Assembly: GCA_035084275.1 (NCBI GenBank)
Contig: CM068752.1
Span: 13,082,001-13,146,000, forward strand
Origin: Hydrolagus colliei
Lineage: Eukaryota
Reading direction: 5' to 3'
Length of the DNA: 64,000 nt
Shown: piece after piece, positions 25,627 to 64,000 of the stretch
Layout of the letters: each line of letters starts with the position of its first letter
Numbering within the stretch: position 1 is the first letter of the stretch
Made by a program: the position numbers and the translations under genes
The notes under the pieces: generated by a model
The model's database searches: none
The model's input: only the letters and a program-made list of their open reading frames with translations
What the model was told of the DNA's origin: nothing

Positions 25627-25657
<31 letters not shown>

Positions 25658-25660
<3 letters not shown>

Positions 25661-26985: not shown

Positions 26986-27174
26986 GATTGATTGACAGCT
27001 GGCAGCAGCTTGTGAATAGGCTTTCGATCACTTAAACACTACCACTAATTGGTCCCCTTCTCTGCGGTGCAATACAGCTTCTATGTTATTTGGGAAGGAA
27101 TTTCGTTAAACTGGGGCACCTCGTATGTCGGGCTGTCCATATTCCACTCAGGAGCCATTATGCCAAATACTCAC

Positions 27175-27450
27175 ACTTGACATTGATGTCAACTGCAAAG
27201 GTATCATTTCCTTGTGAATTATTTACCACACAGGTAAAGGTTCCTGAAATCTTTCTGGAAATTGTTCTGAACAACAGGACTCTGTCTGTACTTTTGAGAG
27301 TTTCTGTTGTGTTTGCGTCTCTTTTTGTTTTGTACCAGGTGTAAGTAGCTTGAGGGTAACTGTCAGTGCTGCATGTCAACGTCATATTTTCAATCCCCTC
27401 AATGATTTCCAAAGATCCATTTATATGAACTGTTGTATTTTGGGGGGCAT
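27175..27450 (-). CDS. Paralogue A C2-set Ig exon
   Basis: 276 nt, phase 1-1, YAPQNTT...LTC...YTWY...SGTFTCVVNN. Confidence 0.9.
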
Positions 27451-28430: not shown

Positions 28431-28733
28431 ATTTTATCTGAAGTGTTATGTTGCCTTGTTTGGAATATTGGTGGTTAGGAGAACTGACCACACATTTGAT
28501 CAGCTTGAGATGATCTCTGTATGAGGGGATAAAAGTGAATGAACTGGTCAGGACCCGGTTAGATACAGACTGTTTTTCCTCAGTCACGGTTCCCTGCTTT
28601 GTCAGCTCAGTGATTCCTTCCCAGGTCAGCTTGGCTCTGACCTGATCATCAATATTAGAGGAGGAACATGATAAAGTGGTGCTGATCCCCTCAGTCACTT
28701 CACTTGGGAAGACATTGGGGTTGCCAGGACGAC
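28431..28733 (-). CDS. Paralogue A Ig domain 2 exon (Siglec D2, C-type)
   Basis: 303 nt, phase 1-1, TLSCSS...LTW...SSFTFIPSYRDH...IKCVV. Confidence 0.9.
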
Positions 28734-28883
28734 CTAACAAAAGGAAACAGAAATAAACAATGTTCAAAATTGTCACCTGGTCAAAATTGGAACCTGTAAA
28801 TACTGGATAAAAACACCTGCAAACTTGTCTGTCTGTCTGCTGGTTTGTCAAATATGTAACAATAAGTGAGAATGAATATTTAC

Positions 28884-29237
28884 CATACACCACGACATTG
28901 ATGGGATGTTGTCCGTTCCATCTATTGAAATCCTGGATCTCAAACCTGAAGCAATAGTCACCAGAATCAGCTTTATTGAGGTTGTTTATCTCAGTTGAGC
29001 AGTTTTTGTTTTTCAGATTTCCTGTTAATTTTATTCTGTTGTATCTTTGGGGCTGGCTGCTTTTATACACCAACGTCGCTTGAGAATTGCATGGTCAACC
29101 TTTGAACCATTTGCCGATTATATTATATTGTTCATTCGGTGGGTCAGGGTGTTTGAATGAACATTTCAGAATCACAGACTCTCCCTCCAACCCAGCAGCA
29201 GAACTGGAAAACGAGACTCCCCAATCATCGGTAGAAG
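28884..29237 (-). CDS. Paralogue A V-set sialic-acid-binding domain exon (interrupted by TGA)
   Basis: DWGVSF...LKCSF...GKWFKG*PC...KNCSTEI...DSGDYCFRFEIQDFNRW resembles sialoadhesin WGVS...YNFRFEIS..NRW. The essential Arg codon is at 28945-28947. Confidence 0.9.
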
Positions 29238-30915
29238 CTGTGGAAGAGGAAACAGATGGACTGGGGTGACTCCATTACTGATTAATAATAATAATAATCA
29301 AATGTAATACACGGCAGGGTGGTAACTTTCTGCCAGGCCACTTCTTTACAAAGATTTGGAAATCTTAGCATGAGATACACTACGATGTAAAGTTACACAA
29401 AATGTATTTAAGTTGCCAGAAGCCTGACATTCCACCATAACACAGGAATTGTGGAACAGCAACACAACAACCGTGGAGGGGAGCAGACACATGGGCAGGA
29501 CATGACACCCCTCTTACAATCACCCCCCCACCCCCCCACACTGGCTCTGACCATCAGGAGAGTCCAGCCCCAGTCAGTGGGTTGACATCATCACCTCGAG
29601 CCTCCTCCCTGAGGTACCAGTGGCCACTACAATAATTCCTGCTGAGATGTGTGGCTCACAGTGAGTATCTACCATCCACCTAGTCAGAGCTCAAACCCAC
29701 TCTAGTCAGATGTTGAATGACCAACTAGTGATTATCCTCCTTGGATGGGGATGTTAAACAGGGTCTGTTTGCAATGAAAGGTTATAATTTATGTCGGTCC
29801 ACGATATTCTGAGCACTGCAGATGACAGCACAGCCAGCCCGGCTCATTAGCAGGATTTGGAAGTGCAGACCAATAACTGGGGGCAGGGAGTCATCCCACT
29901 CAGCTCTTGTTAAGAGTAATTTTGTTGTTGTTAACAGTGCAAGCCCAAGTCATAATGGAAGGTTGGCCCTGGTCAGATAGCGACATCAATGGCATGCTAT
30001 GCGTTGTTTGCTGGTTAGGCTGCAGCTATACCCGAATCCGCACTCTGGGGTCCCCAAGTCTTGGCTCTTGCCAACCTGCGCCTAAACTGTTTGGGAGTTA
30101 GGTAAGCAGGATGCATCCTCCTGGGAGATAGTACACATTCCATTGCAACAATCTATCTGTGGGATTTTCACATGTAGGTGGGATGCATGGAAATCTCAGC
30201 ATCATTTGGATACTCTTTAAGAATGGTGATGCGTTTCTGCAAGTGTCAGATATCCGGCTGACCAGAAGAGGCGAGATGAGTGTCCCTGAGGCAGAATTTA
30301 TTCTGATAGGAGGAAACCAAGTTGAACAGTCTATGTAGCTCATCGATGAGATATGGAGCTGTAGACATGCCATTAACACCATGAGCCAAAATACTAATAC
30401 AATTACAATATTATGTGGTTACCATGTATTAATATACCCTTTACTAAACTCCATACACCCATCACGCCAGTTCCAACACAGCTCCACTTGCTCCTTATCG
30501 CAGAACAACATCAAGATCCTCACACTCGTTTTCAAATCTCTTCATGCCCTGCCACTTCCTTGTCTCTCTGACCTGCTTACTCCCTCATCCGCTAACTGCT
30601 GACTCTAGCCTCATGCATGTCGCATGCGCTCATGCCTATTGCCGCCACCTCATCCCCCCATCTCAGTGTGGCGCTCCACTCCTCTCAAGCACTCTGGGAT
30701 ACTGCCCGGTGTGAGGGGAGCTATAGAACTACAAGTTGTCATAGTTATTACTGAGGCTCACCGGCCCAGAAGCTCACACTATGGGAAACAAGATCAGCCT
30801 CAAGGTTCATCACTTCTTGATGACAGAGGGTTCCTGTGAAAAGCTCACGCACATAGTTAGTGATTACCATTGATCTAAAGCTTAGAGATAATGGTGGTAA
30901 AGGGTGGAACCTTAC

Positions 30916-30967
30916 CCTGGATGAGACACACCAACTGCAGTGCCAGGATGCAGTGAGAGGCACTCAT
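30916..30967 (-). CDS. Paralogue A signal peptide exon (MSASHCILALQLVCLIQ-A)
   Basis: ATG follows a ctctccag acceptor (exon starts 30982). Hydrophobic core, phase-1 GTAAGG donor joining the V exon in frame. Confidence 0.85.
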
Positions 30968-44121: not shown

Positions 44122-44824
44122 TATATCAAAGCGGAACAAATTCACCTGAGTAAAATGCTTTTTTAATGACATCGCTTCAGTTTGAAACCACCTTGATTTT
44201 TCAGCTCCTTTCATGGCTGTTCACATTCAGTACCTTTGTGTGTGGTGTTTCATATTTCTGTGGCACGTTAGCCATAGAGTCATGGAATGGTTACCTCATC
44301 GCAGGCCGGCCTGTTCATCATCTCTGTTGTCATCCCACTGGAGCTATCTCTCTAATCCGATTCCCTGATGTTACCCTATCAAGTCTATTCTGTGGCCAAA
44401 TCCCCTAACTCTCCAGCTCAGATGCCCAGCCAGATGTGACAAACATTTTTGCATTGATTCCTCATTGCATATATCTATACTTTCTGAAATTGACCTTTAC
44501 AACCCCTGAACCTGTGCCCTCTTGTCCTTTGCTGCCTTTGTGCATCTGAAAATACTTCCACAATCCCATTTAATATCATACATAGTTGATACCTTCAGAG
44601 AATTCCCTCTGAGATGTCCCTTTTCAAATCTAATTGTGACAGTCATTTCTGTGAAGTGCGTTTTGACATTATGGAAGTTATAAAGAAGAAAAACTTGTAT
44701 TTGTATCGTCATCGTTAGAATGAAACACTATCATTGGTAACATTGGCGCTTCATTGCTACCAGCAACAAATCAAGCCATTGCCATCGGAGTTACACCATG
44801 GAAAATAGCTGTTTTTATTAAAGC

Positions 44825-45022
44825 TTATTTTACCCGCAAAGTGGAATAAATAATTTGTTCTGAATCATCTTCTGCTGGTTTCCGTGCCCCTGGCTGCTTA
44901 GTAAACTGGATGGCAGCGTACACTAAACAGGCTTCAGAATCCTCGTCAGCATTTTGAGATGCATTCACTTCTGGCTGCATGCACTCCTCTTCTGGCTCAG
45001 CATTTCCCCGCATTGCTTTCGG
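44825..45022 (-). CDS. Paralogue B terminal exon with ITIMs LVYAAI and IIYSTL
   Basis: 198 nt including TAA. Confidence 0.88.
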   Translation of the reverse strand, partial: PKAMRGNAEPEEECMQPEVNASQNADEDSEACLVYAAIQFTKQPGARKPAEDDSEQIIYSTLRVK

Positions 45023-48000
45023 CTGGTTAACCATAACAGAGTGATTGTTAGAATTGATGTAGATGTGAAGTCAAAATTGGTTATTAAAGGGGATGTTAAA
45101 ACATAATTCTTTGCACACAGGATGTTAGAATACTAAATAGTTTGCCACAAAGTTTCTAAAATTAATCAATAACTTGAGAAGCAGGGCTATTTCAGGACAC
45201 TATCCAACTAAACATCAAGAAGATTTAAGCCATACTGCTTGGCATCTGTCAATGTCTTCTCTCCCGTGGCTCCAACTTCTCTTTTCAAGAGAAAATGTGT
45301 CTAGGCTTTCCTGATAGGTATAACCATGCAGTTCTAGTACCATCCTTGTAAATCTTCTTTGCACCTTCTCCAGTCCTTCCATATCATTTCTATCCTATGG
45401 TAACCAGAACTGTATTCTCATACCCTAACACTGAGCTCATACCCTCATCTCACCACTCCTCACCAGGCTCCACCAGCTCAATGTCATGGAATGGATCGAT
45501 ATCAAGGACTTCTCATACATCTACAAATCCTTTCAGCCACTGTTACCTCCCCTCCTTTCTGATCTACTTTCTCCCCACTACACTACCCACTGCCTCCACT
45601 TGGCTGGCTAGGGCCGCCTGCTTGTCCCTCGATACTTTGCATCATCATCGGCGGGGACACTTTCATTCACTGCATCTAAGGCTTTGGAACTATCTTCCCA
45701 ATCCCTCTGCCTTGTCATCTCCTTCCCTTCTTCTAGATCTTTGCCACTGTTAAGTGCAAGGAGACACTGACCCATATGAACTGTGCTATATAAAACAAGT
45801 TATTTTTGTTGATTCACCTCAATGGTACTATATATGCTTTCTTGCTTGTCTACTTTGGCTGGTTCGGAATTCTCTGGGTGGCTGGAGATGCAGGAATCAT
45901 GCAGCAAATTTTCTCCAGGCTCATCCTTAACTGTTGCTGACATACCCATCATATTTTCATACTCATGCTCTTCCTTGTTGTCAACTTCAATCATCCGGTT
46001 ATCCTGTCAACAGCATAATAATTACAATTCTTCTCCAGAGAATTATGAAACAACAATAACAAAAACAAAATTACACTTGTTGTTCAAGGACAATCTTGTC
46101 CTGCTCGTCAGGAGGACTTTCCAAGGTGCTGGACAGTCATTGTTTCAGATACAAGTTGGGGTCGGGGATGGCGAGGGAACAGGGAGGGTTTGGGGTGACT
46201 GATGGAAACCATTGAAGAGGAGAGTCTTGTGGATAAAGGGGTTAAAGGATGTTGGGATAAGGCGGGTAAGGTGGAGTTAGAATAGATCAGTCATGATCTT
46301 ATTGAATGGCAGGGCAGGCTCGAGGGGCCGAATGGCCTACTCCTGCTCCTAATTCTTATGTTCTTATGTCTTGAGGTAGGTATTGAAGGAGGCTAGGCAT
46401 AGGGCAAGGCAGAAGGATTGTGGGATGGAGTTCCAGAGATTTGTGGCAGAGTGGCTGAACGCTCGCCTGCCAGTGGCGTGGCAGGTGGGTCGGGGGACAT
46501 GGAGCAGGCCGGAGCCTGCTGAACAGAAGTGGCAGGCAGGTTAGTAGGGGGTTACGAGATTGCAGAGGTAGGGTGGGCTGAGGCCATGGAATTGAATGCT
46601 CTGGATGGGGAACCAATGGAGTCGGGCAAGGATGGGGGAGACGGGGTCATGGAGCGGTAGAGGACATGGGCTTGAGTTCTGTACTGTCTGCAGCCTATGG
46701 AGGGAGGAATTGGGAAGGCCAAAAAGCAGCAGGTTGGCATAGTCGAGCCAGGATGTAATGAAAGTGTGAATGAGGGTTTTAGCAGCCTGAGGGATGAGGT
46801 AATGTCAGAGTCAGGCAATATTGTGGAAGTGAAGGAAGGCAGAGAGGGTCTTGTTGGCATTAAAATGTAGAAAGTTAACTCTCATCCAGGACTTGATGTC
46901 TGACAGGGAGTCAGTGAGGACAAGGAGGCAGAGAGAGCCCTGATCACAGATGTGAAACCAGGCATATTATGCACTGAAGGGGCCATTTAACCTTTGTCTC
47001 TGTCAGACCTGTTTCTCTAAATTGCTCAGTTTTGAAAATATTCTCACTTTCCAATACTTCTCCCTTAATGTTTTCATTACTCAGGTGCTAATGAGTGCCC
47101 AAGTTTATCAACAACACCCTGCACTTATGCTGGGTAGCATATCTGAGCACTTCACAGTGGTGGACAAACCAGGAGAGAGGCAGATGGCTGGTTGAAGAAG
47201 AAAATCTTCAGATGGAACATAAACATGAACAAGGAGATGTAGAGATTTAGGCAAAGAGTTGAAGAGTAAATAGTGGCTTAAGAATTCTAAGAGAATAATA
47301 ATAACCCTTGCATTTGATATAGCAGTTTTCACCAATATGAAACAATATACATATATAGCGCTTTTCACATCTTATCGACGTCTCAAAGCACTTCACAGAA
47401 TACAATATACTGTAAAGTGAATTGACTGTATATTTATGGGCAAAGATATTCATTCTAAGATCTCCCTGAGCCTCTCAATCTCTTGTTCTGGTGAAAACAG
47501 CTCCCAGTTTATCCAGCTGCTCTTCATATGTTTATTGTTTCATACTGGTATATCTTTTTGGTGAATCCCACAATGGGAAGCCCAAAATTGAACACTTTGC
47601 TCCAACTGCAATCTAACCAATGTCCTATAGTGTTCCAACGTAACTTACATATGTCCCATTTGACTTCTTGATAGCTTTCTGCACCTTGCCCACCACTTTT
47701 AATATACAATGGAAGCCATTTAACCAGACTTCGCTTAACCCCAGATGCCAAGTAAATTGAATAAAACCACCCATCCCAGATTCAATTGTATCCCTATCCG
47801 ATTTAAATGTGCTGGATAATTCATACACTGTGTCTGGGTAATCCAGACAAAATACCTTTCTAATCACTACTGAATGTACTCACTCACATCTTCTATGTCT
47901 CCAACAGCTCTATTCAGCCTCAAGAAGCTCCAGGACACAGATGGGAGGAGTCAAATTGCTATTGATTGACAGCAGACTCCAACGATTCACAAGCAGTTCG

Positions 48001-51000
48001 CTTGTCAATCAGTGAGTGGGAGGAGGAATGGGGGAAGAAACAAGGGAAGGAATGGAGTCAAATCACAATTGATTGACAGCTGAATCTGCTTATAAAATGA
48101 CTGGAGTGACCATCGATTCACAAGCACCGCCAAGGCTGTTAAATGACCTTTGGGCTGCTACTTGATCTAGTATGCCATTGCTTAGAACGTCAGGGACACT
48201 ATACGCAGTGCTTGTTGGGGGTCGCTCGACCTGTAACCAGAGAGTGACCCCAAGTGTGTGAATTTTTTCCTTTGTAGAAGCCTCTCCCCATAAAGGGGGG
48301 AGCATCGGAGTAGTTTCCCAATGTCTGTTTTGGGGTTTTTGTTTTTTGGCCTACCATCCGGTAAGGAAAGGATGGTGGAGCTGGGATTAGCCCCTTTGTA
48401 ACTGCTCCCTGTAAATAAAGGCAGCAGTGCAGAGAAGCGAGGAGGCCCTGGCATAAGGGGATGTGGGAAATAGGCGTCGAGAATGCTAGGTTTTGGGGGG
48501 TTTTCTCCACAAAGGCGGTGGAAGGATGTTTTTTTTTGTGTGTGGTGATTGTTTTTTTTGTTTGTTTCGCGTGGGTACGGAGTCAGGGCCGATGCGGAAT
48601 GTCACGGGAGAAAAGGACTTAGGCGAATGGATGTGACGGGGAAAAGTTTAGAAAACAAATTATATGATTTTAATCAAATTAAAAATATATATTTGTTTAA
48701 AGAAAACCTTTGGGCTGCTACTAATTGACTACTTTTCCATTTGATGGGAATGTCAATGAGAGGGAGAAGGTGTCGCTATCACTCCTCTGCTGGGTGGGAA
48801 GAGGTAATGGTATTTCAGTTAATCCTGGATACCGCTTTAAATGTGACAAAATGCACAATCCTGATGTGTCTCACTTAACTGGTTTCCACTGTATTTGTAC
48901 CTTTTTCTTTAAGTTTGCCAAAGATGTTAGAAAAAAATAAGCTAGGTTTTCATTTGCAAAGGGCAATTTGAGTTCAGATATCTGAAGTTTTTCTTTACCC
49001 AGAAGTTAATTGATGACTGGATCAACTTTCCATGGAGGTTGGCTGAGGCTAGGTCATGGGAATCATTTAAAAACCACCACAAATACTTCAAATGCTGTTT
49101 GCACCAATCTAATGATTACGCATTTTACCTTATTGATCTGGTGAGCAACCTTAGTCTTTTATATTGTATTGTTGCATCTTGAACTATCCTTTAAAGTTTA
49201 TATCTGGTTTTCCCTTGTCTAACCTTGCCCACGTATCTCGCCACTGCCACTATTTCTATCCCCTGCCTGCTTTGACCCTCATTCATGCCTTCATTTTCTC
49301 CAGGCTTGCCTATACCAATGCTCTGTTCACTGACCTCTGTAGTACAGATCCTCTCCTAGACCAGTAATGGAGCACCTAACCCCAGCCTCACATAGCTCCA
49401 CTGGCTCCACATCTAGTGAATAAAGAATCTTATCCTCACATTCAAATGCTTCCATAGCCTTGCTCCACTGTAATTCTGTGACTAACTGTGATCCTACTAC
49501 TTCCTCTACTAAGTCTGCATCATGTCTCCAGAAATAAAAGGTGCTGTACAAATGTCATTTTGTTGTTGTTGTTGTCTCCTTCCCACTTTTTCTCTGCTAT
49601 TGGCTCGTGAGCTTTCATTCTTCCCCATTCCTCGAGCCCCATCTCTGAAATTCTATCCAAAGTCCCCCTGCCTTTCTGTCTTCCCCTAGTCTTCAAATAG
49701 CCCTGAACTCCTAATGCATTGGCCATGTTTTCAGCCAAATGTCCTCTCATTTTGTCAGGACCAACTCCAAGCTTTGACTCTGTCAGTTGTGTTACGGACT
49801 TGGAGACATCTTCCTGACGTGAAAGTTACAAATTGTTGTTGCTTATCCATTTCTATAGTCTATCAATTTCCTATCACTGTCTTTTATAGTAGTTGCCACA
49901 GTTTATTTTATTGTCTTGCTTTTCCTGAGGCCCATTCATAGCTCTTCTGACACCAGCTAATTCAGCATAGACTGAAACACCAGTCATGGAAACACAGAAA
50001 AAGGGATGACTATCACTTGGCTCAGTGATAGACCAAACAGTGCATTTCACTCTGAGCCACTGAGAGAAAGAACCATCTCAATTCTTTAACAATTAAGATT
50101 AGTAACATCTTCACAAACCTGATTGGAATTCGAAAATTCATCAATCATCATGGCTTGGGAATCATTTTTTGGCTGTTTCCCTGATGGAATAGAAAAGTGA
50201 ATAATTGGTACTTTTATTTTAAGATTGATCATTGAACAAAATTGAACGAAGCATTGTGCAGGAATGTAGAAGACCATCGTATTTAATTTGGAGTGTACCA
50301 AATATAAGTAATATCGATTATTGATCAGGATTTTTGATCAGGTAACCAACTAAGACAAGCTTTCACCTTGGTTGAGTAGAATGGAAGTGAGTCATTTTAT
50401 GGATATATGTTTAATCAGATATTAGACTGGGATCTGTAACATTGGCACAGAGGAGGGATAGACTTGACTTACTTTGGTTTAGTCGTTTTATACAGTACAC
50501 TAGCATCACGGTCAAGAGAAGGACCAAGACCACAATACCTCCGATAGATATTGATAGAAGGTTATCTGACCAACCTGCCAATGTAAATATTCAAATAGTT
50601 CTGATCAACACAGTGATAGCAAAGATTTGTAGCAATAAAATTGTTAGGATTATTACTCTTGTTATTATATTATGGATTAATATGAAGCAACACTATTAAC
50701 AAAACAAGAATAGCAAGTTTACGCTTGTATAGTCCTCTAAGGCTGAAAATCTTGGCAACTACATTAGAAGCAAAAGTGCATAAAATGGCCAACTTTGAGG
50801 TCATCAGGTCACTATTGATGCATCTTGCATGTGAGGGACAAGAAGCGCCCACTGATGTGATTTCCTTTACCAATTGGCATCAATGGTTTTTGTTGAATAA
50901 AGCGCACAGGAATTATTTCTGATCAGTCAGTTGTCTGACATACCGGTATGTGAAAACCCATCTCCATGTTTAGTATCTAACCCAGATGAAAGGCCTACAT

Positions 51001-54000
51001 GTGTATATTTCCTTTACATGAAAATGTCTTGGTATCTGGAATGGAATGTGAGCACTGTTAGAGGGAGAAGGAAGTGTCACTCTAATAATCTGCCAGATAA
51101 GCTTTTTTGACATTGGGAACATGACTGTAGATTAATTTTGAGCAGTTCAGCCAGTGACATTGATGTACCTCATTAAATTAAATACAGCGTAATCTATAGG
51201 TCTAACTTGCAGATTACTTAACACAGTTACTTACTCTGTTTAGACTTTGTTTTGCACCTTTTCTCTGAATAAACTTGACCGTATTTATTCTCAGCTCGAC
51301 ACGAAAAACAGAAACCTTCTAATGCTTGCTCAGCCAGGCTGTTAGACATAGTACCATTGACTTGGGTATTTTCCTTAGTCTTGGATTCAGTAAGATTCCA
51401 AATGATAGTTGCTGGAGGGTTGGCATCTGCAAAGCACTTGTAATTCAGTCCATCGTAATTAATGTTAACTTCACTAGGTCCATCTGTAATTGGAAATTAA
51501 CAAACATTTAAATCACATTTTTCACTCTTACCTTTATTTTCAGCCTTTTCGCTCCTCTCCTTAGACCAATATGGAGAATGTCTGTAAGTACAGTGAAATA
51601 TGCTGAACCATCGCTTAACCCTAGGAAAATTGAACAAAACCCTCGACTCTGATTCAGTTGTATATTTCCATGTATTTAATATGTTGGTTAATTTGGACAG
51701 AAATCCAGTTCATTCCGGGCTGGTCATTGTAGGATGTACTAACTCGTGCCTTCTTTGTGTCTATTGGCTCTTGGGTGGAGATGGGAGGAGTCTAAGATTG
51801 ACTGACTGTGGACTCCAGCCATTCACAAGCAGTAAAGGGATGAGGAACAGGGAAGAATAGGGAGGGAAATTGTGATTGATTGTCAGCCATCAGCCGCTTG
51901 ATGCAGCCTTGATATTGACACCATGGTAATAATATAAGCCATGTGCTGATATAAAACAGTGTTTTATTATCAGGAGTTCACTGTCGTCAGCCGCTTGTGA
52001 ATGGGCCGTCAATCACATCTGCACCACCGCTAATTGTTCTCCTTCCCCTACAATGGGATAGGCAATGGAAGGGAGGAACCATTGCTCCTCTGCTGGATGG
52101 GAAGCTATTTTGCAGCCAAACAACGTTAATCTGTTTCACCGAATTCTATGAGTGTACAGGATTTTAACTTTAACTCCTTATCTTGCAGAATCCTCCGCCT
52201 CATCCATCACCTGATTCAAGAGCTACCTCAAGGCACTCCACTATGACCAGGCTTTCGATTAACCTTCTTATAACCTGCTCTTCACTGTCCCCAATCCATA
52301 CCCCCCGAATATTGCCAGTCCAGCGTCTTGGGAAGTCCTCTCGACATGAATAGCACTATAGAACTGTAATTTTATTGTTAATAATAATACTCCTTGCATT
52401 TAATATAGCACTTTTCAGGTCTTCTAGACGTCTCAAAGCGCTTCACTGAATATAATATTCTGTGACTGTATATTTGTGGGCTCACGTAAGGCGAGTGCTC
52501 CAACTACCTGAGCTACAGGACTCCACAGGACTCAAAGTTTAAAGCAAGGCTGACAGTTTGGGGATTCAGAAGGAAGACATTTGGATTTAGACTTAAACTT
52601 TTCTCCTTGAATGTTTGACATTAACAATTCAGGACAATTAAATTCAGAGATCATTTTGAATTCAAAATTGCTGTAGTTAGTTAAAATACTTGTTGTCTGT
52701 TCTGTTTAGTTAGTTAACATTTTATTTCAGTTAATATCGAATGCCTCTTAGACCAGATGAAATGGTCACCCCGCTATATCTGGCTTAACCCGCTCCCACT
52801 CTATACACCAAGAGTGAGATGAACTCTAACTCTAATGTGGAATAATCCACTTAAAAACTGTTAACTAAAACAACAACACAATTACATTTGTAAAGTGTTT
52901 CATGTAAGGAGGATGTCCTGAGGTACTGAACAGTCATGGATCAGGACCAGAACCCATGTGTGCAGGGAAAGGTTGGGATAAGGAAGGGAAGATGGACTGG
53001 GATGGAGGTTCAAGGCACAGTCAAAAAGGAGGGTCTTGAGTCATGTCTTGAAGGAGGCAACAGAGGGATCAAGAGGTTAAAGACAAATACTCACATATGA
53101 TGTTGATGTCAGCTGCAGTGGTGTCATTTCCCTGTGAATTATTTACCATGCAGGTAAAGGTTCCCGAGTCCTTTCTGGATAATGTTCTGAACAACAGGAT
53201 GCTGTCTGTACTTTTGAGAGTTTCTGTTGTGTTTGTGTCTCTTTTCGTCTTGTACCAGGTATAAGTAGCTTGAGGGTAACTGTCAGTGCTGCATGTCAGT
53301 GTCATATTTTCAGCCCCCTCAATGATTTCCAAAGATCCATTTATTTCAATTGTTGTATTTTGGGGGGCATCTGAAATGTGGAGAGAACTGTAGATCAGTA
53401 CCATGTACTGTAGATTGGAGCTCTTCACTGTCACTGTGTCACACTCACAATCCCAATCTCAATCTCACTCCCTTCTCTCCCTCCATCCTCCACTAGTATA
53501 TCCCAGTAACATTGGGCATGTTCAAGTTATAAAAAAGAAGATTGAGAGGTAACTTGTTTGCTGTCATCAAGATTCTAAAGGGGCAAGACAATAAAGATCA
53601 TAACAGGCTCTTTCAACTTGTCCAGAATAGTAAAACCAGAGATTGTCTGTGATTGAAGGGGGTAAATTCAAAATGAATTTATGCAAACCCTATTACTTTG
53701 AGCAAATAGTGAATCTGTGGAACAGACTCTCTTGGGAGACAGTTAAAGCAGAAACTGATTTTTTACAAAAAAATCAGATTAGAAAATTTTAGGAAATATT
53801 ATTGCGGGATATACTACATAGCTAGTTTGGGACATATATGCACGCGACTGCCTGCCTTGAAGGCAAACTAGACAGACCTTGGTCTTTTGTCACCTAGCAT
53901 TAATTCAGTTATTTCTGAAGGTAAGAACCCCACAAAAAAATATATATATTTGTCCACTCAATCCACAAGTGTTTGTGGGATGCTGCTGTGCGCAATTGGC

Positions 54001-57000
54001 TGCCATGTTGTGTCCACAAACTACACATTCAATCCACATGACAATATATTCCACAAAGCACTTTCAGATGTCTCGACGGTTTGATAAATTGCAACATCAA
54101 AGGATTATCATAATACAGTACTATAATCTACTATCTTGGTGAATCCTAAAATATTGATCTGGGTTTATTGTTCAATCCCATTTATAATTGTATGCGTCTC
54201 TCTAAAGTCCTCCATGAGGCATTTTATCTTTGGAGTGAAGAGCCCCAATTTAACCAATTTGTTGCTCATTGTGCATTCCACGAACACTGGGAATTATCAG
54301 TGGACTCCAGCCATTCACAAGTGGCTCGAGTTGGGATGCCAATCAGTGAGCAGGTAGAGGAACGAGCAAGAATAAATTAGGGAAATTGTGATTGATTGGC
54401 AGCTGCTTGTGACTGGGCTGTCAATCACATCTGCACCACCACTGATAAAATAAAAATATATAATAACACCACCACTGATAAATCTCCCTCGCGTCCAATG
54501 AGACCATCAATTGGAATGGAGGAAATATTGATTCTCTGCTGGGTAGGAAGGTATTTTGATTAACTTCAGACACCCCTTAGGCTGGAAAATACAGCCACCC
54601 AAGCACACTTTGTTTTGCATTATTAACAACTCTTATCTCCAGTTTTGTTGCAAGTGCATCATCTGTTGTCTACCCCATTTTCTCCTTTGACTTCCTTGCA
54701 ATGCCATCCCACTCTGTTAACCCTTAAAAGACCCTCCCGACATGCCGTAGTTCTGACGAAGGGTCATGGACCTGAAATGCTGACTCACTTTCCTTTCTCC
54801 ATAGATGCTGCCTGACCTGCTGAGTGTTCTCAGAGACTTCTGTTTCGATCCCAGATAATGTCTGGCTTAACTGGCTCCCACTGTACCGATCAGGAGCAAG
54901 AAAAGCTCTCACTCTTAATCCACTCAGGAATAGTTAAAACAAAATACTCACACATGACATTGATGTCAGCTGCAAAGGTATCATTTCCCTGTGAATTATT
55001 TACCACGCAGGTAAAGGTTCCTGAATCCCTTCTGGATATTGTTCTGAACAACAGGATGCTGTCTGTATTTTTGAGAGTTTCTGTTGTGTTTGTGTCTCTT
55101 TTTGTCTTGTACCAGGTGTAAGTAGCTTGAGGGTAACTGTCAGTGCTGCATGTCAGTGTTATATTTTCAGTCCCCTCAATGATTTCCAAAGGCCCATTTA
55201 TATGAACTGTTGTATTTTGGGGGGCATCTGAAATGTGGAGAGAATTGTGTTGGAAGCAGCCATGATATTGACAACATGGTGATATAAGCCACATGATGAT
55301 ATACGACAGTGTTTTACTATTAGGAGTTCACTGTACAGTACATTGTTCCAGGATGTTGGAACCTCCCCCATTGTGATTGACTCCCTCACAGGATCCATCA
55401 GTGTTGTCTTGTCCCTGTAACTATGCTGGGGTATCATCCATCCCAGGGGATTTGTTGGCTTTGAGCCCCTTAAGCCTCTAGAATCTCAGCCTCACTTATG
55501 TTGAATTCTTGGAGTTCAAACAAAGTTTGCTGGGTGTGGGGATTGGGGCATGTCCTCCCTTGTAAACATCACTAGGAAATAGGTATTTGATGTTTTCTAT
55601 GCCCCAATTGTTCTCTTCGAGTTGATCCATTTCTGTTTGGATGGTTTGAGACTTTGGGGTAAAGTTCAGGAGTGTATTTCAGTTTGGGTTGTGCTAACTT
55701 GTATTAGTGAAAATAACCATCAGATGGCAGCACATTCCTTCCGGCAAGAGGGCATCATTTTCAGACAACATTGTCACCATATTTGATTGTTTTCTGAAAT
55801 TTGCACATTAACAATTTGGAGTCCCTAAAGTGGTTTCTTTTAAAATAAAGGGCCAAATCTACATTTCTCCCTGACAAAAAATGAACATTTTACTGATTGG
55901 GTACACTAGATATGAGACCGCCATGTCCTACAACCTGCTCTTGGGCTAACATTAAATCAAATACTTTGTTCTATGATAGAAATTCCTTTAACACACCTGT
56001 CTTGGTACAGACACTGTTTGGTGGGTTGAAATATATTAGATAGTGTTGTGGGGCAGCATGATATTAGGGGTTTACTCAGACCTATATGTTCGAGAGAGAA
56101 ATTAAATGATTTTGCAAGATTGGTGTGGACAACGCAGGCTGTTTGGCCCATATCTGATGTGGTCCCTCCAGAACCGATACCCTACCATTCTGCTCATCAC
56201 TGCATCAAGTTGCTTTTATAAATGAGTCCAGTGTCCTGGCCTCTACCACCTTTCTAGTCATAGATTATCCTCTGTGTAAAGAAAATCTTCTTGGTATCTG
56301 TCCTGACTTTTCTCTTGATATCTCTAAATCTATGCCCTCATGTTCTACTATTTTAGTGAATGCTAAAATATTGTTCTGGTTTTACTTTTTCAATTCCATT
56401 TAGAATTGTATACACCTCTCCAAAATCCTATCTGAGGCATTCATCCTTAGGACTGAAGAGCCCCAATTTAACCTATTTGTTGTTTGTCATAGCAAATCCC
56501 TCTAACACTGGGGATTGTCAGAAGGATTTGGGCTGCCAATCAGGAAGAAAGAGGAGGAATGAGGAAGAATAAGGGAGGGAAATCACGATTGATTGGCTGA
56601 CGCTTGTGAATAGGCTGTTGAATCACTTCAACAGCATCACTAATCGATCCCTTTCCCTACCAATGGGAATGTCAATGAGCGGGATGCAGTGCAGCTTCTC
56701 TGTTAGTTGGGAAGGTATTTTGGTTAACATATTATGTAGGACAAAACAGTTGTCCCTGGTATGCCTAGCTTAACCAGATCCCACTGGAAACACAAAGAGC
56801 CAGAAGAGCTCTCACTCTAACGTGGTATAATCTGCTTCAAGCCAAATACTCACACATGACATTGATGTTAGATGCACTGGTGTCATTTCCCTGTGAATTA
56901 TTTACCACACAAGTGAAGGTTCCTGAATCCTCTCTGGATATTGTTCTGAACAGCAGAACTCTGTCTGTACTTTTGAGAGTTTCTGTTGCGTTTGTGTCTC

Positions 57001-60000
57001 TTTTTGTCTTGTACCAGGTGTAAGTAGCTTGAGGGTAACTGTCAGTGCCGCATGTCAGTGTCATATTTTCAGTCCCCTCAATGATTTTCAAAGGCCCATT
57101 TATTTGAACTGTTGTATTTTGGGGGGCATCTGAAATGTGGAGAGAATTTTGTTGGAAACAGCCATAATATTGACAACATGGTGATATAAGCCACATGATG
57201 ATATAAGACAGTGTTTTACTATGAGGAGTTCACTGTACAGTGTTTCAGGATGTTGGAACCTCCCCCATTGAGATTGACTCCCTCACAGTATCTGTCAGTG
57301 TTGTATTGTCTCTCTAAATATGCCAGGGTATCATCCAACCAGGGGATTTGTTGGCTTTGAGCAACTTGAGCCTCTCTAGAACCTCAGCCTCACTTATGTT
57401 AAATTCCTGGAGTTCAAATGAAGATTGCTGGATGTTGGTGTTTGAGCATATTTTAGTGTCTTTCCTAGTAAATATCTTATTTGAGTTGATATGTTGCTGT
57501 TTGGATGTTTTGAGACATTGGAGTAAAGTTTAGGATTGTATTTAAATTTGGGTTGTGTTACCTTGTATTAGTGAAAATGGCAGCACATCTCCCCCACTTA
57601 GTGGGCTCCTTTTTTCAGACAAAATCATCACCATCTTTGATTATGTTTTTAAACTGTCACATTAACATTTTGCAGTTGCTAAAGTGGTTTATTTTAAAAT
57701 AAAGGGCCAAATCTACATTCTCCCTGACACAAAATGAACATTTAACTTATTGGGGAGCCTAGATATGAGACCCCCCATGTCTTACAACCTTTGCCCATTG
57801 GCTTGCCAAACATCAAATACAAAAACAGAACTCGCTGGGAACACTCAACAGGTCAGGCAGCATCTATGGAGAAAGGAAAAGTGAATCAATGTTTCGGGTC
57901 CACGTCCCTTTGTCTGAACTGGGGCATGTTGGGAGGGAGAGACTGTTAAGTACTAATAGAGAGGGAGAGGGAGCAGAAGGAAGACAAAGGAGTAAATGGG
58001 GTAGAGGGAATGAGAGGATAAATGTTTTTTTTAAGAAAAACACACACAAAAGGAGGGCAAAATGTGGGTTCTCCCTGACTGAAAATGAAGATTTTATTGA
58101 TTGGTTACTTACTTTAGTTATCAGTTCACTATGATGAATAACCAGCCCTTTGGCATGACAGACATCAAATCAAATATTTTGTTCCACAGTAGAAATTCCT
58201 TTGTTCCATTGGCAGAAATTCCTTTAATACAGGTATTAAAGGAACAGGTATTTCCTTACAGGTATTTTTGGGAAGGGAGGAGAGCATGAGGGGCTTGCTC
58301 AGGCCTAGACTTGGTTCAAGAGTAAAATGATTTCATCTAACAATATTGTTGTGAATGATGCAGCTGTTTGGGCCTTCTGATCTGGTTCCTCCAGAACCCT
58401 CACCCCACCATCACTGCACCAAGTTACTTTTTTAAATGAGTCCAATGTCCTGGCCTCTTCCACCTTTGCTGTTATTGATATTTCCTGTTGTTGAGCCCTA
58501 TAGCTCAGGTGTAAGCCACACATCTCGCAGCCACGGTTAGTTTCCCGGCAGTGCAAAACCATATGCAAGATTCCTTACTCGACATGACTAATAATAATTC
58601 CTTAAGAAATAAGATATTAATAAATTGTTCATTTCAATCCCCAACTGTTTGTGGGACCCTACTGTGTGCTATTGGCTACTGTATTTTGTCCACAAATATT
58701 CAGTCAATTTACTTCACAGTATATTCTATGAGGTGCTTTGAAATATCTAGAAAACTTGAAATGCGCTGTATCAAATGCAATGATTATTACCTTGATTATC
58801 CTTTGCATCAAGCATATCTTCCTGGTTTCTGTCATGACGTTTTCCTTGATAACTAGACATATGCACTCAGGATTCTGTCCTTGGTCCCCTCCTCTACAAT
58901 ATCTATATGCTCTGTCTCAGTAACATGGGGTCAATTTTCAAATGTATTTGGATGACACTCAACTGTATCTCTGCCTCCACCTTGACTCCAGGATCACTGG
59001 TATCCTAACAGAATATCTGTCAAACATCAATTCCTGGATAAGCGCTACATTTCTTCAGTTGAATGTCAACATGATCGAGGCCCTCCTGATTGACTCACAT
59101 CAGCACCTCCACACTTCAGATGCCGACACCATCACCATGAATGGATGTGAACTCCATCTCTCTAAGCCAGTCCAGAACCGTGTGCCTTGTTTGACCCTCA
59201 ACTATCCTTTCTAACCAACACCCATGCCATAACTTGCTCTGGCTTCCCCAACTTCTGCAATATCTTCCGTCTTTGCCACTGTCTCACAACACTGGCTGCT
59301 AGTACCCTCATACCCACATTCATAAAATCGAGGCTTGACTACGCAAACTCCTTCCTTGTCAGCCTCCCCAACTCATCCCTCCAGAGGATGCAGTTTGCAA
59401 ACTGCAGAATGCTGCAGCCAATGTATTCTACCACACCAGGACGCATGACACTATCACTACCATTGTCATTGGACTTCACTGGCTTCCCATCACGCAGAGG
59501 ATACAATTAAAAAATCCTGGTCCTCACTTTCAAAGCCCTCCATACCCTTGCACAATCCTACCTCTGTGACCTCCTTAACCCAACCATTGGCGGACAGGAT
59601 GCCATTCTGGTTTTCTGTCCCCACCTTCCTGTACTCCATCCTGCAGTCTTTCCCCCTTGCTCCTGCCATTGTGACATGCTTTTGATCACCCTCCTCCCAC
59701 TGCTTTTCTACACCCACAATGCCAAACACCAGCTTGGGTCAAAAATACTAACAGTATGGTGCATTGGGACGCCCTCCCAATGTGAAAGTCGATATGCAAA
59801 TGTAATTTTGCTATTGTATGTTGCATATCTTTAAAATTCTCTGAGGCATTTTCTCTCTGGACTGAAGAGCCCTATTTTAATGTATTGGTGGCTCATACAA
59901 TAACAACAACAACAACACAAAATTACATTTATGGAGCATCTTTCACGTCGGGAGGATGTTCCAAGGTGCTGAACAGTCAGGGGTCAGGACCAGAGCACTG

Positions 60001-62435
60001 GGGAAAGACAAGGTAGGGTGGAGGGGAAGGACAGAGGTGGGAGGGCAGCAGAAGGCACGATCAAACAGGAGGGTCTTGAGACCGGCGTTGAAAAAGGCAA
60101 AGGAGGAAGTGAGGTGAAGAAACTGTGGGATGGAGTTCCGGAGTTGGGGGCAGAGAGCCTGCAAGCCCATCCACCAATGCTAGGGCCGGTTGGGCAGGGG
60201 ACATGGAGCAGACTGTAGCCTGCTGAACCGAAGGGGTGGGCATGTTCATAGGGAGACAGCGGGTCAGAGAGATAGGAGTGAGGACGAGGATCTTGAATTT
60301 GATCCTCTGGAAGATGGGGAGTCAATGGAGCGCATTTTTCTAACACTGGTGATTATCAGTGGACTCCACCTATTCACAAGTGGCTGAAATTGGCCAGTGA
60401 GGAGGAGGTATAAGGAAGAATAAGGGAGGGTAATCACAGCCGCTTATGAATGGGCTGTCAACCAGCTCAGCACCAATTGGTTCACTTCCCTTCCAATGGG
60501 AATGCTAACTAGTACCTCCGCTCCACTGTTGGTTGGGAAAGTATTTTGGTTAACCACAGACACCTCTTAGGTCGGACAAAACAGCGGTCCCTGATATGTC
60601 TGGCTTAACCAGCTCCCACTGTTTACATCAAGATCCAGAAGAACTCTCACTCTAATGTGTTATAATCTACCCAGGAATGGTTAAAGCCAAATACTCACAC
60701 ATGACGTTGATGTCAGCTGCACTGGTGTCATTTCCCTGTGAATTATTTACCACACAGGTAAAGGTTCCTGAATCCTTTTTGGATATTGTTCTGAACAACA
60801 AGACGCTGCCTGTACTTTTGAGAGTTTCTCTTGCGTTTGTGTTTCTTTTTGTCTTGTACCAGGTGTACGTAACTTGAGGGTAACTGTCAGTGCCGCATGT
60901 CAGCGTCATATTTTCAATCCCCTCAATGATTTCCAAAGGTCCATTTATATGAACTGTTGTATTTTGGGGGGCATCTGAAATGTGGAGAGAATTGTGTTGG
61001 AAGCAGCCATGATATTGACAACATGGTGATATAAGCCACATGATGATATAACAGTGTTTTATTATCAGGAGTTCACTGTACATTGTTCCAGGACATTAGA
61101 ACCTTCCCCATTGTGATTGATTCTCTCACATTATCTGTCAGTGGTGTTTTGTCCCTGTAAATATGCTGGGGTATCATCCATTCTAGGGGAATAGTTGGCT
61201 TTGAGCCCTTTGAGCCTCTGTAGAATCCCATGCAGAAGGAGGGCAAAATCTGTGTTCTCCCTGACTAAAAAAAAGGACATTTTACTTATTGAGTATCCTC
61301 GTTATGATGCCCCCCATGAAGTAACCTGCCAGGCATGATGATCATCAAATCAAGTACAGTACTTTGTTCCATGATAGAAATTCATTTAACACGACTGTCT
61401 TGTACAGACACTGGTGGGGTAAGTAATAGAAAATGAAAGTTGAATTAACAGAAGGTACTCTATCAATGTAATTTTGTTTGTTGTTTGTACTTGGGAGCAA
61501 AATACTGAAAGCAGGCAATTACTGGGAAAGGCGGGTCAAGTGGTAGAACAGAACCAACACAAAACCTCTTGAGACCTTTCTGTACAGTTTGGAATCATTA
61601 GAACGCTGCTTCAGTATGGATAACTTACATTTTACCTGAAGTGTTATGTTGCCTTGTTTGGAATATTGGTGGTTAGGAGAACTGACCACACATTTGATCA
61701 GCTTGAGATGATCTCTGTATGAGGGGATAAAAGTGAATGAACTGGTGAGGACCCGGTTAGATACAGACTGTTTTTCCTCAGTCACGGTTTCCTGCTTTGT
61801 CAGCTCAGTGATTCCTTCCCAGGTCAACTTGGCTCTGACCTGATCATCAATGTTAGAGGAGGAACATGATAAAGTGGTGCTGATCCCCTCAGTCACTTCA
61901 CTTGGGAGGACATTGGGGTTGCCAGGACGACCTAACAAAAGGAAACAGAAATAAACAATGTTCAAAATTGTCACCTGGTCAAAATTGGCACCTCTAAATA
62001 CTGGATAAAAACACCTGCAAACTTGTCTGTCTGTCTGCTGGTTTGTCAAATATGTAACAAGAAGTGAGAAGGAATATTTACCATACACCATGACATTGAT
62101 GGGATGTTGTCCGGTCCAAGCATTGAAATCCTGGATCTCAAACCTGAAGCAATAGTCACCAGAATCAGCTTTATTGAGGTTGTTTATCTCAGTTGAGCAG
62201 TTTTTATTTTTCAGATTTCCTGTTAATTTTATTCTATTGTATCTTTGGGGCTGGCTGCTTTCATATACCAACGTCGCTTGAGAATTGCATGGAGAACCTT
62301 TGAACCATTTGCCGATTATATTATATTGTTCATTCGGTGGGTCAGGGTGTTTGAATGAACATTTCAGAATCACAGACTCTCCCTCCAACCCAGCAGCAGA
62401 ACTGGAAAACGAGACTCCCCAATCATTGGCAGAAG
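44825..62435 (-). CDS. Siglec-like paralogue B (CD22/sialoadhesin-like inhibitory receptor), V-C-4xC2-TM-3 tail exons; leader exon lies beyond the window
   Basis: join 62082-62435, 61629-61931, 60699-60974, 56854-57129, 54952-55227, 53095-53370, 50473-50574, 50119-50180, 45818-46003, 44825-45022. All GT-AG, phases compatible, no internal stops seen. Confidence 0.88.
45818..46003 (-). CDS. Paralogue B cytoplasmic exon 2 with YENM and SIYSTI
   Basis: 186 nt, phase 0-0. Confidence 0.85.
46045..46900 (-). mobile_element. L2 fragment with a nested plus-strand CR1 3' tail (~46228-46350)
   Basis: L2 motifs in ORFs 46356-46616 and 46552-46860. Tail gggccgaatggcctactcctgctcctaattcttatgttcttatg. Confidence 0.7.
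48163..48705 (+). mobile_element. 5'-truncated non-LTR (L1/Tx1-like) 3' end with a perfect 17-bp TSD
   Basis: acctttgggctgctact at 48146-48162 and 48706-48722, T-rich 3' UTR, A-rich end. Confidence 0.6.
50119..50180 (-). CDS. Paralogue B cytoplasmic exon 1 (RKQPKNDSQAMMIDEFSNSNQ)
   Basis: 62 nt, phase 1-0. Confidence 0.8.
50473..50574 (-). CDS. Paralogue B transmembrane exon (CWSDNLLSISIGGIVVLVLLLTVMLVYCIKRLNQ)
   Basis: 102 nt, phase 1-1, GTAAGT donor. Confidence 0.88.
53095..53370 (-). CDS. Paralogue B C2-set exon d
   Basis: 276 nt tandem duplicate, open. The intron upstream of the acceptor is replaced after about 20 nt. Confidence 0.87.
54740..54858 (+). mobile_element. Penelope-type short repeat with a hammerhead-like core
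   Basis: CTGACGA-agggtcatggacct-GAAA followed by ctccatagatgctgcctgacctgctgagt. Confidence 0.6.
54952..55227 (-). CDS. Paralogue B C2-set exon c
   Basis: 276 nt tandem duplicate, open, same splice sites. Confidence 0.9.
56854..57129 (-). CDS. Paralogue B C2-set exon b
   Basis: 276 nt tandem duplicate, open, same splice sites. Confidence 0.9.
57820..57935 (-). mobile_element. Second copy of the Penelope-type short repeat
   Basis: Reverse complement of the 54740 element with a more decayed core (CAGACAA...GAAAC). Confidence 0.6.
58500..58795 (+). mobile_element. tRNA/Deu SINE (degraded)
   Basis: tagctcagg head, gtgggaccctactgtgtgctattggct core, caaatgcaatgattatt tail. Confidence 0.65.
58810..59810 (+). 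mobile_element. L2 RT and 3' fragment
   Basis: YLDDTQLY, FLQLNV, SRLDYANS. The 3' part is shared with paralogue A at ~26040-26270. Confidence 0.8.
59900..60325 (-). mobile_element. L2 3' fragment
   Basis: (CAA)n tail. A remnant is present at the orthologous site in A (~26415-26535). Confidence 0.78.
60699..60974 (-). CDS. Paralogue B C2-set exon a
   Basis: 276 nt, ttctctccacatttcag acceptor, GTGAGT donor. Confidence 0.9.
61629..61931 (-). CDS. Paralogue B Ig domain 2 exon
   Basis: 303 nt, 3 aa differences from paralogue A. Confidence 0.92.
62082..62435 (-). CDS. Paralogue B V-set domain exon (intact)
   Basis: 354 nt. SANDWGVSF...KGSPC...DYCFRFEIQDFNAWTGQH. Essential Arg codon at 62143-62145. 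Confidence 0.92.
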
Positions 62436-62599
62436 CTGTGGAAGAGGAAACAGACAGACTCCATTACTGGTTGCCCGAGGACTAATAATAATTCTATGGA
62501 ATACCAGGCAGGTGGTATCTTTCCGCACTGTCCCCTTCTTTAGGAAGATTTTTAAACAAAGGCATCATCGTCTAACAGATATGCTAATATGTAAAGTTA

Positions 62600-63312
62600 T
62601 CTCCGCATCTCAGGACTGACAACATCAGCATTCGAGGCTGCTCTCTCCACCTCTCGAAGCCAGTCAGGAATCTGGGCACCTTGTTTGACCCTGAACTGTC
62701 CTTCCTCTCTCATACAGGTCGATTATGGGAACTCTCTCCTTGATGGCCTTCCCAGCTCCTCCCTTCACAAGTTGCAGATGATTCAGAATTCTGCAGCTCG
62801 TGTACTCTCCCGCAAGAGGCTCCGTAACCACATCACTCCCACCCTCGCCCATCTCCATTGGCTCCCCATCTCCCAGAGGATCAAATTCAAGATCCTCACC
62901 TTCAAGGCCATTCACGGTCTCGCCCCCATCTATCTCTGTGACCTGCTGTCTCCCTATCAGCCTGCCTGTCCCCTCCAGTCAGCAGGCTCTGGCCTCCTTG
63001 CCCTAACTGCCCTACCATCAGCGGCCAGGCTTTCAGTCTCTCTGCTCCCACACTATGGAACTCCATCTCGCAATCCCTTTGCCTCACTTCCTCCGTTTCC
63101 TCCTTCAAGGCTGGTCTTAAGACCTTCCTCTTCGAGGGGAGCCTTTTGCTCCCCTCCAAACTCTTCACCCTCTCCTACTCTCCTTCCCCTTCCCCGTACT
63201 CCAACCTCCCCACCCCCCGCTCGGGTCCCAACCTGATTGTTTAGGGCCTTGGGATGTCCTCCCGACATGAAAGGCGCTCTATAAATGTAATTTTGTTGTT
63301 GTTCTTGTTGTT
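62600..63312 (+). mobile_element. L2 3' fragment in the leader-V intron of B
   Basis: DYGNSLL.GLP...QMIQNSAARVL...LHWLPI, (GTT)n tail. Absent at the orthologous site in A. Confidence 0.85.
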
Positions 63313-64000
63313 ACAAGAAATGTATTTAAGTTGGCAGAAGCCTGACATTCCACCATAACACAGGAATTGTGGAACAGCAACACAACAACCGTGGAGGGGA
63401 GCAGACACATGGGCAGGACATGGCACCCCTCTTACAATCACCTCCCATTAAGCCAGTCCAGCCCCAGTCAATGGGATAGGATCATTATCATCTCCTTAAA
63501 AAGATGCAGGTTCACTCCTCGAGCCTCCTCCCCGAGGTCCCAGTGGCCACTACAATAATTCATGCTGAGATGTATGGCCCACAGTGAAGCTCACAGAGTA
63601 TCTACCATCCGCCTTGTCAGAACTGAAACCCGCTCTAGTCAGATGCCGAATCACCGAAAGTAATTATAGTGATTACTCTCCTTGGGGCCGGGGGAGTGGG
63701 GGAAACGGATGGTAAACAGGTTCTATTTGGCAATGAAATGTTCGAATAGAGCCAGCCCTTTGTTGTTGTCTTATGAGTCCAGTTCTTGAGCTAGGCAGGT
63801 CCACAGTATTCCAGGCACTGCTGATGACAGCACAGCCAATCTGGCTCATTGCAGGATTTGGAAGGGTAACCAGTCACTGGGGCAAGGAGTCATCCCACTC
63901 AGTTCCTGTTAACAGTGCAAGCCAATGTCCTAACAGGTAGGTTGCCATTGATGTACCAGACAGGAACATCAATGGCAAGCTATGTGGTTTTAGCTGGTTA

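Follow-up and report, generated by a model that had tools for sequence, protein, structure and literature searches.

The window analysed here, a 64,000-nt stretch of the genome of the chimaera Hydrolagus colliei (contig CM068752.1, forward-strand positions 13,082,001 to 13,146,000), is vertebrate DNA without runs of N and carries two related minus-strand genes, which we call A and B. The sequence shows a real and well-defined tandem expansion of an Ig exon in gene B, which resembles genes for inhibitory receptors of the Siglec family. Gene B probably encodes a Siglec-like type I receptor with inhibitory motifs of the immunoreceptor tyrosine-based kind (ITIMs), the stalk of which has been extended by tandem duplication of a genomic unit holding one Ig exon.

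A census of the repeat exon by BLASTN and TBLASTN, with the first exon as the query, returned exactly five copies in the window (E values of 1e-104 to 1e-144), all on the minus strand; four belong to gene B and one belongs to gene A. The X and Y types of acceptor flank are described below.

60699-60974, minus strand: repeat exon R4, the 5'-most in gene B; 276 nt, phase 1-1, Ig domain (C2/I-type), X-type acceptor flank
56854-57129, minus strand: repeat exon R3 of gene B; 276 nt, phase 1-1, X-type acceptor flank
54952-55227, minus strand: repeat exon R2 of gene B; 276 nt, phase 1-1, X-type acceptor flank
53095-53370, minus strand: repeat exon R1, the 3'-most in gene B; 276 nt, phase 1-1, Y-type acceptor flank
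27175-27450, minus strand: single repeat exon of gene A; 276 nt, X-type flank

The starts of the four gene B copies are spaced 1857, 1902 and 3845 nt apart. Every repeat exon in the window is bordered by an identical 15-nt acceptor, CTCTCCACATTTCAG, and an identical 10-nt donor, GTGAGTATTT, and none contains a stop codon or an indel. Each encodes an Ig domain of 91 to 92 residues with the canonical Cys...Trp...Cys arrangement, the three structural residues being invariant among the repeats, and carries 4 to 6 N-glycosylation sequons (20 in the repeats altogether). R1, for example, matched the Pfam models ig (2.6e-13), Ig_3 (4.7e-13), I-set (1.6e-9) and C2-set_2 (2.8e-5). Head-to-tail copies, a symmetric phase and intact frames and splice sites are what tandem exon duplication leaves behind. 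A preliminary description of this DNA had reported four 276-nt phase 1-1 C2 exons in gene B and one in gene A, with these same spacings and with every copy open and correctly bordered by splice sites, and the searches and coordinates bear it out on each of these counts.

The exon structure of gene B was worked out from its open frames and splice sites. The gene occupies the minus strand from position 44825 to beyond position 62435 and, besides R4 to R1, comprises the following exons.

62082-62435, minus strand: V-set exon; 354 nt, phase 1-1, with WGVS and YCFRFE motifs
61629-61931, minus strand: first C2-set exon (C2-1); 303 nt, phase 1-1
51235-51483, minus strand: membrane-proximal Ig-like exon; 249 nt, phase 1-1; overlooked in the preliminary description
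50473-50574, minus strand: transmembrane exon; 102 nt, with a hydrophobic span without a charged residue
50119-50180, minus strand: juxtamembrane exon; 62 nt, phase 1 to 0
45818-46003, minus strand: cytoplasmic exon, with the ITIM SIYSTI
44825-45022, minus strand: final coding exon; contains two ITIMs, LVYAAI and IIYSTL, as well as the stop codon

All of the splice sites are AG/GT, and the reading frame runs uninterrupted through 851 residues, starting in the V exon and ending at the stop codon. The predicted product therefore consists of a V domain, a C2 domain, the four repeats, the proximal Ig-like domain, a transmembrane segment (LLSISIGGIVVLVLLLTVMLVYCI, which has no charged residue) and three ITIMs, every one of which fits the pattern [SIVL]xYxx[IVL]. 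Because gene B is collinear with gene A, its signal-peptide exon must, by this comparison, lie past position 64000, beyond the end of the window.

The proximal exon alters the domain count. Pfam Ig models matched it only below threshold (E values of 0.04 to 0.09), but its Cys16, Trp28, Cys58 and Cys61 do not vary among six chondrichthyan sequences (those of window genes A and B, Callorhinchus, Heterodontus and Mustelus). An AlphaFold2 model of this exon alone had a mean predicted local distance difference test score (pLDDT) of 83.4 and a predicted template modeling score (pTM) of 0.70, with seven strands forming a beta sandwich. A Foldseek search with this model found Ig and fibronectin type III (FnIII) sandwiches, including domains 6 and 7 of CD22 (query TM-score [TMq] of 0.58, E value of 0.036), at E values that were weak and all at least 0.02. 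Because of the conserved Cys/Trp/Cys and the predicted beta sandwich, we assign seven predicted Ig-like domains to gene B and four to gene A, the seventh on weaker evidence than the others. The earlier count of six and three, which omitted the proximal exon, is thus one short in each gene.

Several features of the head of the predicted protein support a Siglec-like identity. Gene B matched the Pfam models V-set (9.1e-24) and Ig_CD22 (2.3e-7), both above their cutoffs, and showed four Ig stretches. Against solved structures in the PDB, the V and C2-1 domains together ranked MAG first (3.6e-15), followed by CD22 (1.3e-12) and sialoadhesin (7.5e-12) and then by CD33, Siglec-7, Siglec-5 and Siglec-8. 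In phmmer alignments, the Arg of YCFRFEI falls on the ligand-binding Arg of MAG (YYFRGDL) and of CD22 (LGLRMES), and homologues from sharks and Callorhinchus keep it. In MAG and CD22, a disulfide joins strands B and E of the V-set domain; its two cysteines align in sequence with those of LKCSF and KNCST in gene B. Also conserved are WGVS at the N terminus and the W motif at the C terminus. Gene B is thus supported as Siglec-like in most but not all sequence features, with putative sialic-acid binding, and on these features its protein would work in the manner of the inhibitory members of the conserved Siglec group that comprises CD22, MAG and sialoadhesin. As to orthology with CD22 itself, the MAG, CD22 and sialoadhesin scores are similar, the stalk domains are recent duplicates, and no synteny with the known CD22 neighborhood was seen at the window locus, where the neighbor is an ARL3-like gene.

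The best database homologue was an NCBI gene model from Callorhinchus milii, named hemicentin-1-like (P0001; 1140 amino acids, 68% identity), which shares this architecture and contains the repeat six times, every copy being included in the model. Automated names given to the homologues are inconsistent (hemicentin-1-like, Schwann cell myelin protein-like and CD22-like), and the hemicentin label is an automated misnomer. Gene A and, downstream of it, the ARL3-like gene are matched in collinear order by the Callorhinchus locus (L001), at ~68 to 90% nucleotide identity, and an Arf-family gene at the matching position in that locus establishes synteny with gene A. By position, then, the Callorhinchus gene is the counterpart of gene A. 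In the window, the ARL3-like small GTPase gene occupies positions 5958-9761 on the minus strand. A protein search with the divergent 3' half of gene B, looking for its Callorhinchus orthologue, returned P0001 only. The six Callorhinchus repeat exons are each 276 nt long, lie ~1350 nt apart and are intact.

Two further observations concern the Callorhinchus model. Its ITIM-bearing cytoplasmic exon is tandemly duplicated (L001 positions 28266-28812 and 30393-30929), and both copies are in P0001, giving it an extra ITIM. Its N terminus (L001 position 10001 onward) is a non-signal-like peptide, MVKGSVVITNHVQELF, and this 5' end is probably mispredicted, because the signal exon found in the window is good and resembles those of shark homologues.

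The sequences around the exons show how the arrays grew. In self-comparison, R2 aligned with R3 at 81% identity over 1117 nt, R3 with R4 at 82% over 851 nt and R2 with R4 at 88% over 654 nt; these three units share the exon and 250 to 700 nt of flank, and their upstream 250 nt are 88 to 91% identical. The homology of R1 to the other units ends ~20 nt on either side of the exon; a SINE (short interspersed element)-like insert lies ~28 nt past the R1 donor, and a shared downstream element resumes after it. The earlier statement that each exon sits in a duplicated intron unit therefore holds for R2, R3 and R4 but fails for R1, which shares with them the exon and ~20 nt on each side and has an unrelated upstream flank. 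The flanks in question are as follows.

60975-61230, minus strand: X-type flank of R4, with copies before R3, R2, the gene A repeat and Callorhinchus repeat 1
57130-57381, minus strand: X-type flank of R3, a copy of the R4 upstream flank
55228-55488, minus strand: X-type flank of R2, a copy of the R4 upstream flank
27451-27708, minus strand: X-type flank of the gene A repeat, a copy of the R4 upstream flank
53371-53506, minus strand: Y-type flank of R1, 84 to 85% identical over 130 nt to the flank before Callorhinchus repeats 2 to 6

In an alignment of the 130-nt upstream flanks of the eleven repeat exons of the two holocephalans, the X flanks (R4, R3 and R2 of gene B, the gene A repeat and Callorhinchus repeat 1) had 78 to 96% mutual identity and the Y flanks (R1 of gene B and Callorhinchus repeats 2 to 6) had 84 to 97%, whereas X and Y flanks were only ~50% identical and form two unrelated classes. 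Because both types are common to both species, the ancestral gene already had two repeats or more, with an exon of the X-flank type placed ahead of one of the Y-flank type; the two repeats of Heterodontus and Pristis agree with this. From this starting point, the X unit, ~1.9 kb long with a single Ig exon of symmetric phase 1-1, grew to three copies in the window lineage (R4, R3 and R2), ahead of a single older Y-type R1, while Callorhinchus amplified the Y unit to five copies, for six repeats in total, and gene A keeps the X repeat only. The two holocephalan arrays thus arose from different duplication units, i.e., independently. Copy number is one in gene A, one to two in protein models from Mustelus, Heterodontus and Pristis, four in gene B and six in Callorhinchus, and this range strengthens the earlier suggestion of an expandable cassette.

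The wide spacing between R4 and R3 has a separate cause. The intron between them is 3569 nt long and contains ~1.8 kb of inserts at positions 57823-60330, interleaved with segments homologous to the unit.

57823-58005, strand not assigned: inverted copy of 54669-54845
58549-58789, strand not assigned: SINE-like block, at least 10 copies in the window
~58870-59830, strand not assigned: L2-like open reading frame (ORF) remnants, like the L2-type tails elsewhere in the window
59897-60330, strand not assigned: L2-tail/SINE-like block, at least 10 copies in the window

Removal of the inserts brings back a unit of ~2 kb, so the 3845-nt spacing is inflated because of L2- and SINE-like sequence. That the last gap had been widened by transposable element (TE) insertions, as first proposed, is thus confirmed by the multicopy blocks and by the unit length that remains once they are removed. 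A Pfam search with the L2-like ORF gave no match; its TE nature consequently rests on the multicopy matches in the window and on its likeness to L2-like tails. A TE insertion was also considered for the upstream flank of R1 and was rejected, since that flank is single copy in the window and orthologous to the flank of the Callorhinchus unit.

Other elements were noted in the window. A stretch of 85 nt at positions 51900-51984 (minus strand), in the intron between R1 and the proximal exon, copies the X-type flank but has no exon beside it; it is inside a palindromic element that occurs once per repeat unit (e.g., 54306-54446), has cagccgctt on both sides and could be what is left of a lost (fifth) unit, or else a small insertion. 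A long interspersed element (LINE) reverse transcriptase ORF is present at 4736-5569 on the plus strand (Pfam RVT_1, 8.6e-12), and L2-tail/SINE-like copies are numerous (e.g., 17655-18126, 20176-20397, 23205-23524, 52862-53066, 59897-60330 and 62853-63313).

Tandem repeats are prone to misassembly, and the array could in principle be a false expansion of one exon unit. Artefactual copies would be near-identical, however, whereas these differ at 7 to 10% of exon sites and ~10 to 50% of flank sites. Their flanks are of two unrelated types that each have orthologous sequence in Callorhinchus, and distinct TE insertions are found in different copies. We regard an assembly artefact as hardly credible.

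Whereas the flanks sort by type, the exons sort by species. Exon identity is 89 to 93% among the window copies, 96 to 99% among the Callorhinchus copies and 85 to 89% between species. A tree of exon DNA is split by species with 100/100 support, the approximately unbiased (AU) test rejected a grouping of exons by flank type (P = 1.6e-5), and ten sites are fixed by species while none is fixed by flank type. Since the exons cluster by species despite flank types that are shared across species, the repeats have most likely been homogenized within each species by gene conversion confined to the exon and the ~20 nt that border it at either end. The repeat exons have at the same time been kept open and in frame. 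Pairwise ratios of nonsynonymous to synonymous substitution rates (dN/dS) among the five window copies are 0.36 to 0.66, and none of the eleven repeat exons has an indel, a stop codon or a splice-site change, while the downstream flanks show much greater divergence and many indels. The intact frame and splice sites across eleven exons are the best sign of constraint.

The phase 1-1 symmetry of the repeats would let any of them be skipped without loss of frame. In the preliminary description, exon-skipping isoforms were deduced from this symmetry. The symmetry itself stands, with identical splice-site sequences at every repeat; the isoforms are still a deduction, now supported indirectly by two predicted Heterodontus francisci isoforms, X2 (679 amino acids) and X4 (586 amino acids), that differ by exactly one 93-amino-acid repeat. 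If the repeats were cassette exons of which any subset could be skipped, gene B would give a ladder of isoforms with 3 to 7 Ig-like domains. The Heterodontus isoforms are, however, computational predictions from another species, and the Callorhinchus model takes in all six repeats, so we hold regular skipping to be possible but doubtful. It is in any case compatible with, and not exclusive of, stalk extension by tandem duplication, for which we take it that all four repeats would be included in the gene B mRNA.

Gene A has the layout of gene B with one repeat.

Near 30917-30967, minus strand: signal exon, encoding a good signal peptide, MSASHCILALQLVCLIQ, that resembles those of shark homologues
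28884-29237, minus strand: V-set exon, 96.3% identical to the gene B V exon, with an in-frame TGA
28431-28733, minus strand: first C2 exon, same layout as in gene B
24251-24502, minus strand: membrane-proximal Ig-like exon, 252 nt
Down to ~18780, minus strand: transmembrane, juxtamembrane and two cytoplasmic exons, same layout as in gene B

The TGA, at 29095-29097, differs by two bases from the TCT of gene B, and the other gene A exons examined are all open. Because of this codon in the V exon, which the preliminary description had missed, gene A is a probable pseudogene or null allele. Comparison of the two genes (A, 18780-29357; B, 44544-62551) gave a mosaic of identities. They are high in the V exon (96.3%), the C2-1 exon (98.0%) and the last exon (91.9%) but low in the proximal Ig (79.8%), transmembrane (80.5%), juxtamembrane (80.3%) and first cytoplasmic (73.4%) exons, and these four values are about as low as those of the comparison with Callorhinchus. 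Because identity varies in this way along the genes, the pattern suggests an older duplication that gave rise to A and B, followed by homogenization of the 5' ligand-binding head, presumably by gene conversion. Both genes have ITIM tails and uncharged transmembrane segments, and they are therefore not an activating/inhibitory pair; what distinguishes them is stalk length.

Some of these observations tell against an extended stalk on a Siglec-like inhibitory receptor. In alignments to MAG and CD22, the cysteines that form the V-C2 interdomain disulfide of mammalian Siglecs are absent from gene B, which has Ser for the first Cys of the MAG/CD22 GxC-x4-C motif and no third Cys in domain 2. This absence, together with the inconsistent names of the homologues, is what would be expected if the protein were a general inhibitory or adhesion receptor of the immunoglobulin superfamily without sialic-acid binding, to which the logic of Siglec stalks would not apply. 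With the top PDB matches all Siglecs, the F-strand Arg, B/E cysteines, WGVS and C-terminal W conserved and Ig_CD22 above its Pfam cutoff, we consider a non-lectin receptor unlikely.

With respect to the stalk, exon identity (90 to 93%) is only slightly above that of the 250-nt upstream flank (87 to 92%), so the case for purifying selection rests on dN/dS values below 1, calculated from few sites, and on the fact that the exons lack indels and stops; the sequence evidence for selection is moderate, not strong. Some copies might accordingly be neutral by-products of unequal crossing-over, either recent or maintained by conversion, that are poorly spliced or not spliced and have no selected function. 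The similarity of exon and flank identities, dN/dS values that denote no strong constraint and TE insertions close to the exons (such as the one next to R1) would all suit such copies. It would be surprising, however, for neutral copies that have diverged by 7 to 10% to show no stop, indel or splice change in any of 4 + 1 + 6 cases while their flanks have acquired indels, or to retain the structural Cys, Trp and Cys without exception, and the parallel expansion in Callorhinchus is annotated as coding. We therefore judge neutrality of some copies to be quite improbable. Finally, gene A, the short comparator, carries a stop codon and is not a clean functional comparator.

We favor, then, the extension of the gene B stalk by duplication of the Ig-exon unit. 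The three extra, heavily N-glycosylated Ig domains would hold the putative lectin head at a greater height over the sialylated glycocalyx of its own cell, and the raised head would favor trans ligands over cis ligands, by analogy with sialoadhesin. Sialoadhesin constructs with four or fewer Ig domains did not bind red cells, and the length of sialoadhesin lets its head escape cis inhibition (PMC10027830). Transferred from this mammalian protein to gene B, a relationship between stalk length and the cis/trans balance would be predicted. More tentatively, the separate X and Y amplifications, the conversion of the exons and the sharing of one head between unequal stalks may indicate that an ancient chondrichthyan Siglec has its stalk length actively tuned, although we would not bet on it.

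Our literature searches for work on the Siglecs of cartilaginous fish, including sharks and Callorhinchus, turned up no dedicated study, and chondrichthyan Siglecs appear to be uncharacterized; in mammals, truncations of sialoadhesin are the only experimental tests of stalk length. This gene family would carry the question beyond mammals. If the proposal is right and copy number is also polymorphic within species, the gene would supply a natural height series of one lectin head, and the hypothesis of cis masking versus trans reach would become directly testable in an early-branching lineage of jawed vertebrates.

Among known systems, CD22 (Siglec-2) resembles gene B in its V-set head with Arg, phase 1-1 C2-type Ig exons, seven Ig-like domains and several ITIMs. 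It differs in having the interdomain disulfide cysteines, and MAG scores slightly better against gene B. The six C2 domains of CD22 are old and diverged, whereas the gene B stalk is made of four near-identical, recent repeats, and the MAG/CD22 neighborhood known from mammals is unlike the ARL3-like neighbor seen here. MAG/Schwann cell myelin protein (Siglec-4) is the best-scoring solved relative over the V and C2-1 domains. Its five Ig domains equal the layout deduced for the ancestral gene (V, C2, two repeats and proximal domain), but MAG is a myelin protein without an ITIM tail, and it has the interdomain disulfide that gene B lacks. Sialoadhesin (Siglec-1), which, unlike gene B, has no ITIMs, owns a 17-Ig stalk that is generally ascribed to Ig-exon duplication. 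It shares with gene B the FRFE-type Arg motif and the N-terminal WGVS, the comparison extending over the V domain only. It has 16 C2 domains (PMC10027830).

The closest counterpart is Callorhinchus P0001, with the same architecture and 276-nt repeat exon and a position syntenic with gene A; it differs in its six repeats of 96 to 99% identity, its period of ~1350 nt, the amplification of the Y-type unit and its duplicated ITIM exon. The A/B pair, with near-identical ligand-binding exons and 3' parts of 73 to 80% identity, also recalls the paired Siglecs of primates, in which gene conversion acts between Siglec-5 and Siglec-14. For Siglec-11 and Siglec-16, conversion keeps the ligand-binding exons of neighboring paralogues near-identical, a pattern described in PMC5701461. 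A and B differ from such pairs in not being activating and inhibitory partners, in their unequal stalks and in the stop codon of A. Ig-exon duplication is a textbook route by which immunoglobulin superfamily receptors grow, and the mechanism is not new. The value of this locus is comparative: a change in stalk length is caught twice, through different duplication units, in two chimaera lineages, alongside exon-limited concerted evolution and a paralogue pair with a nearly identical head.

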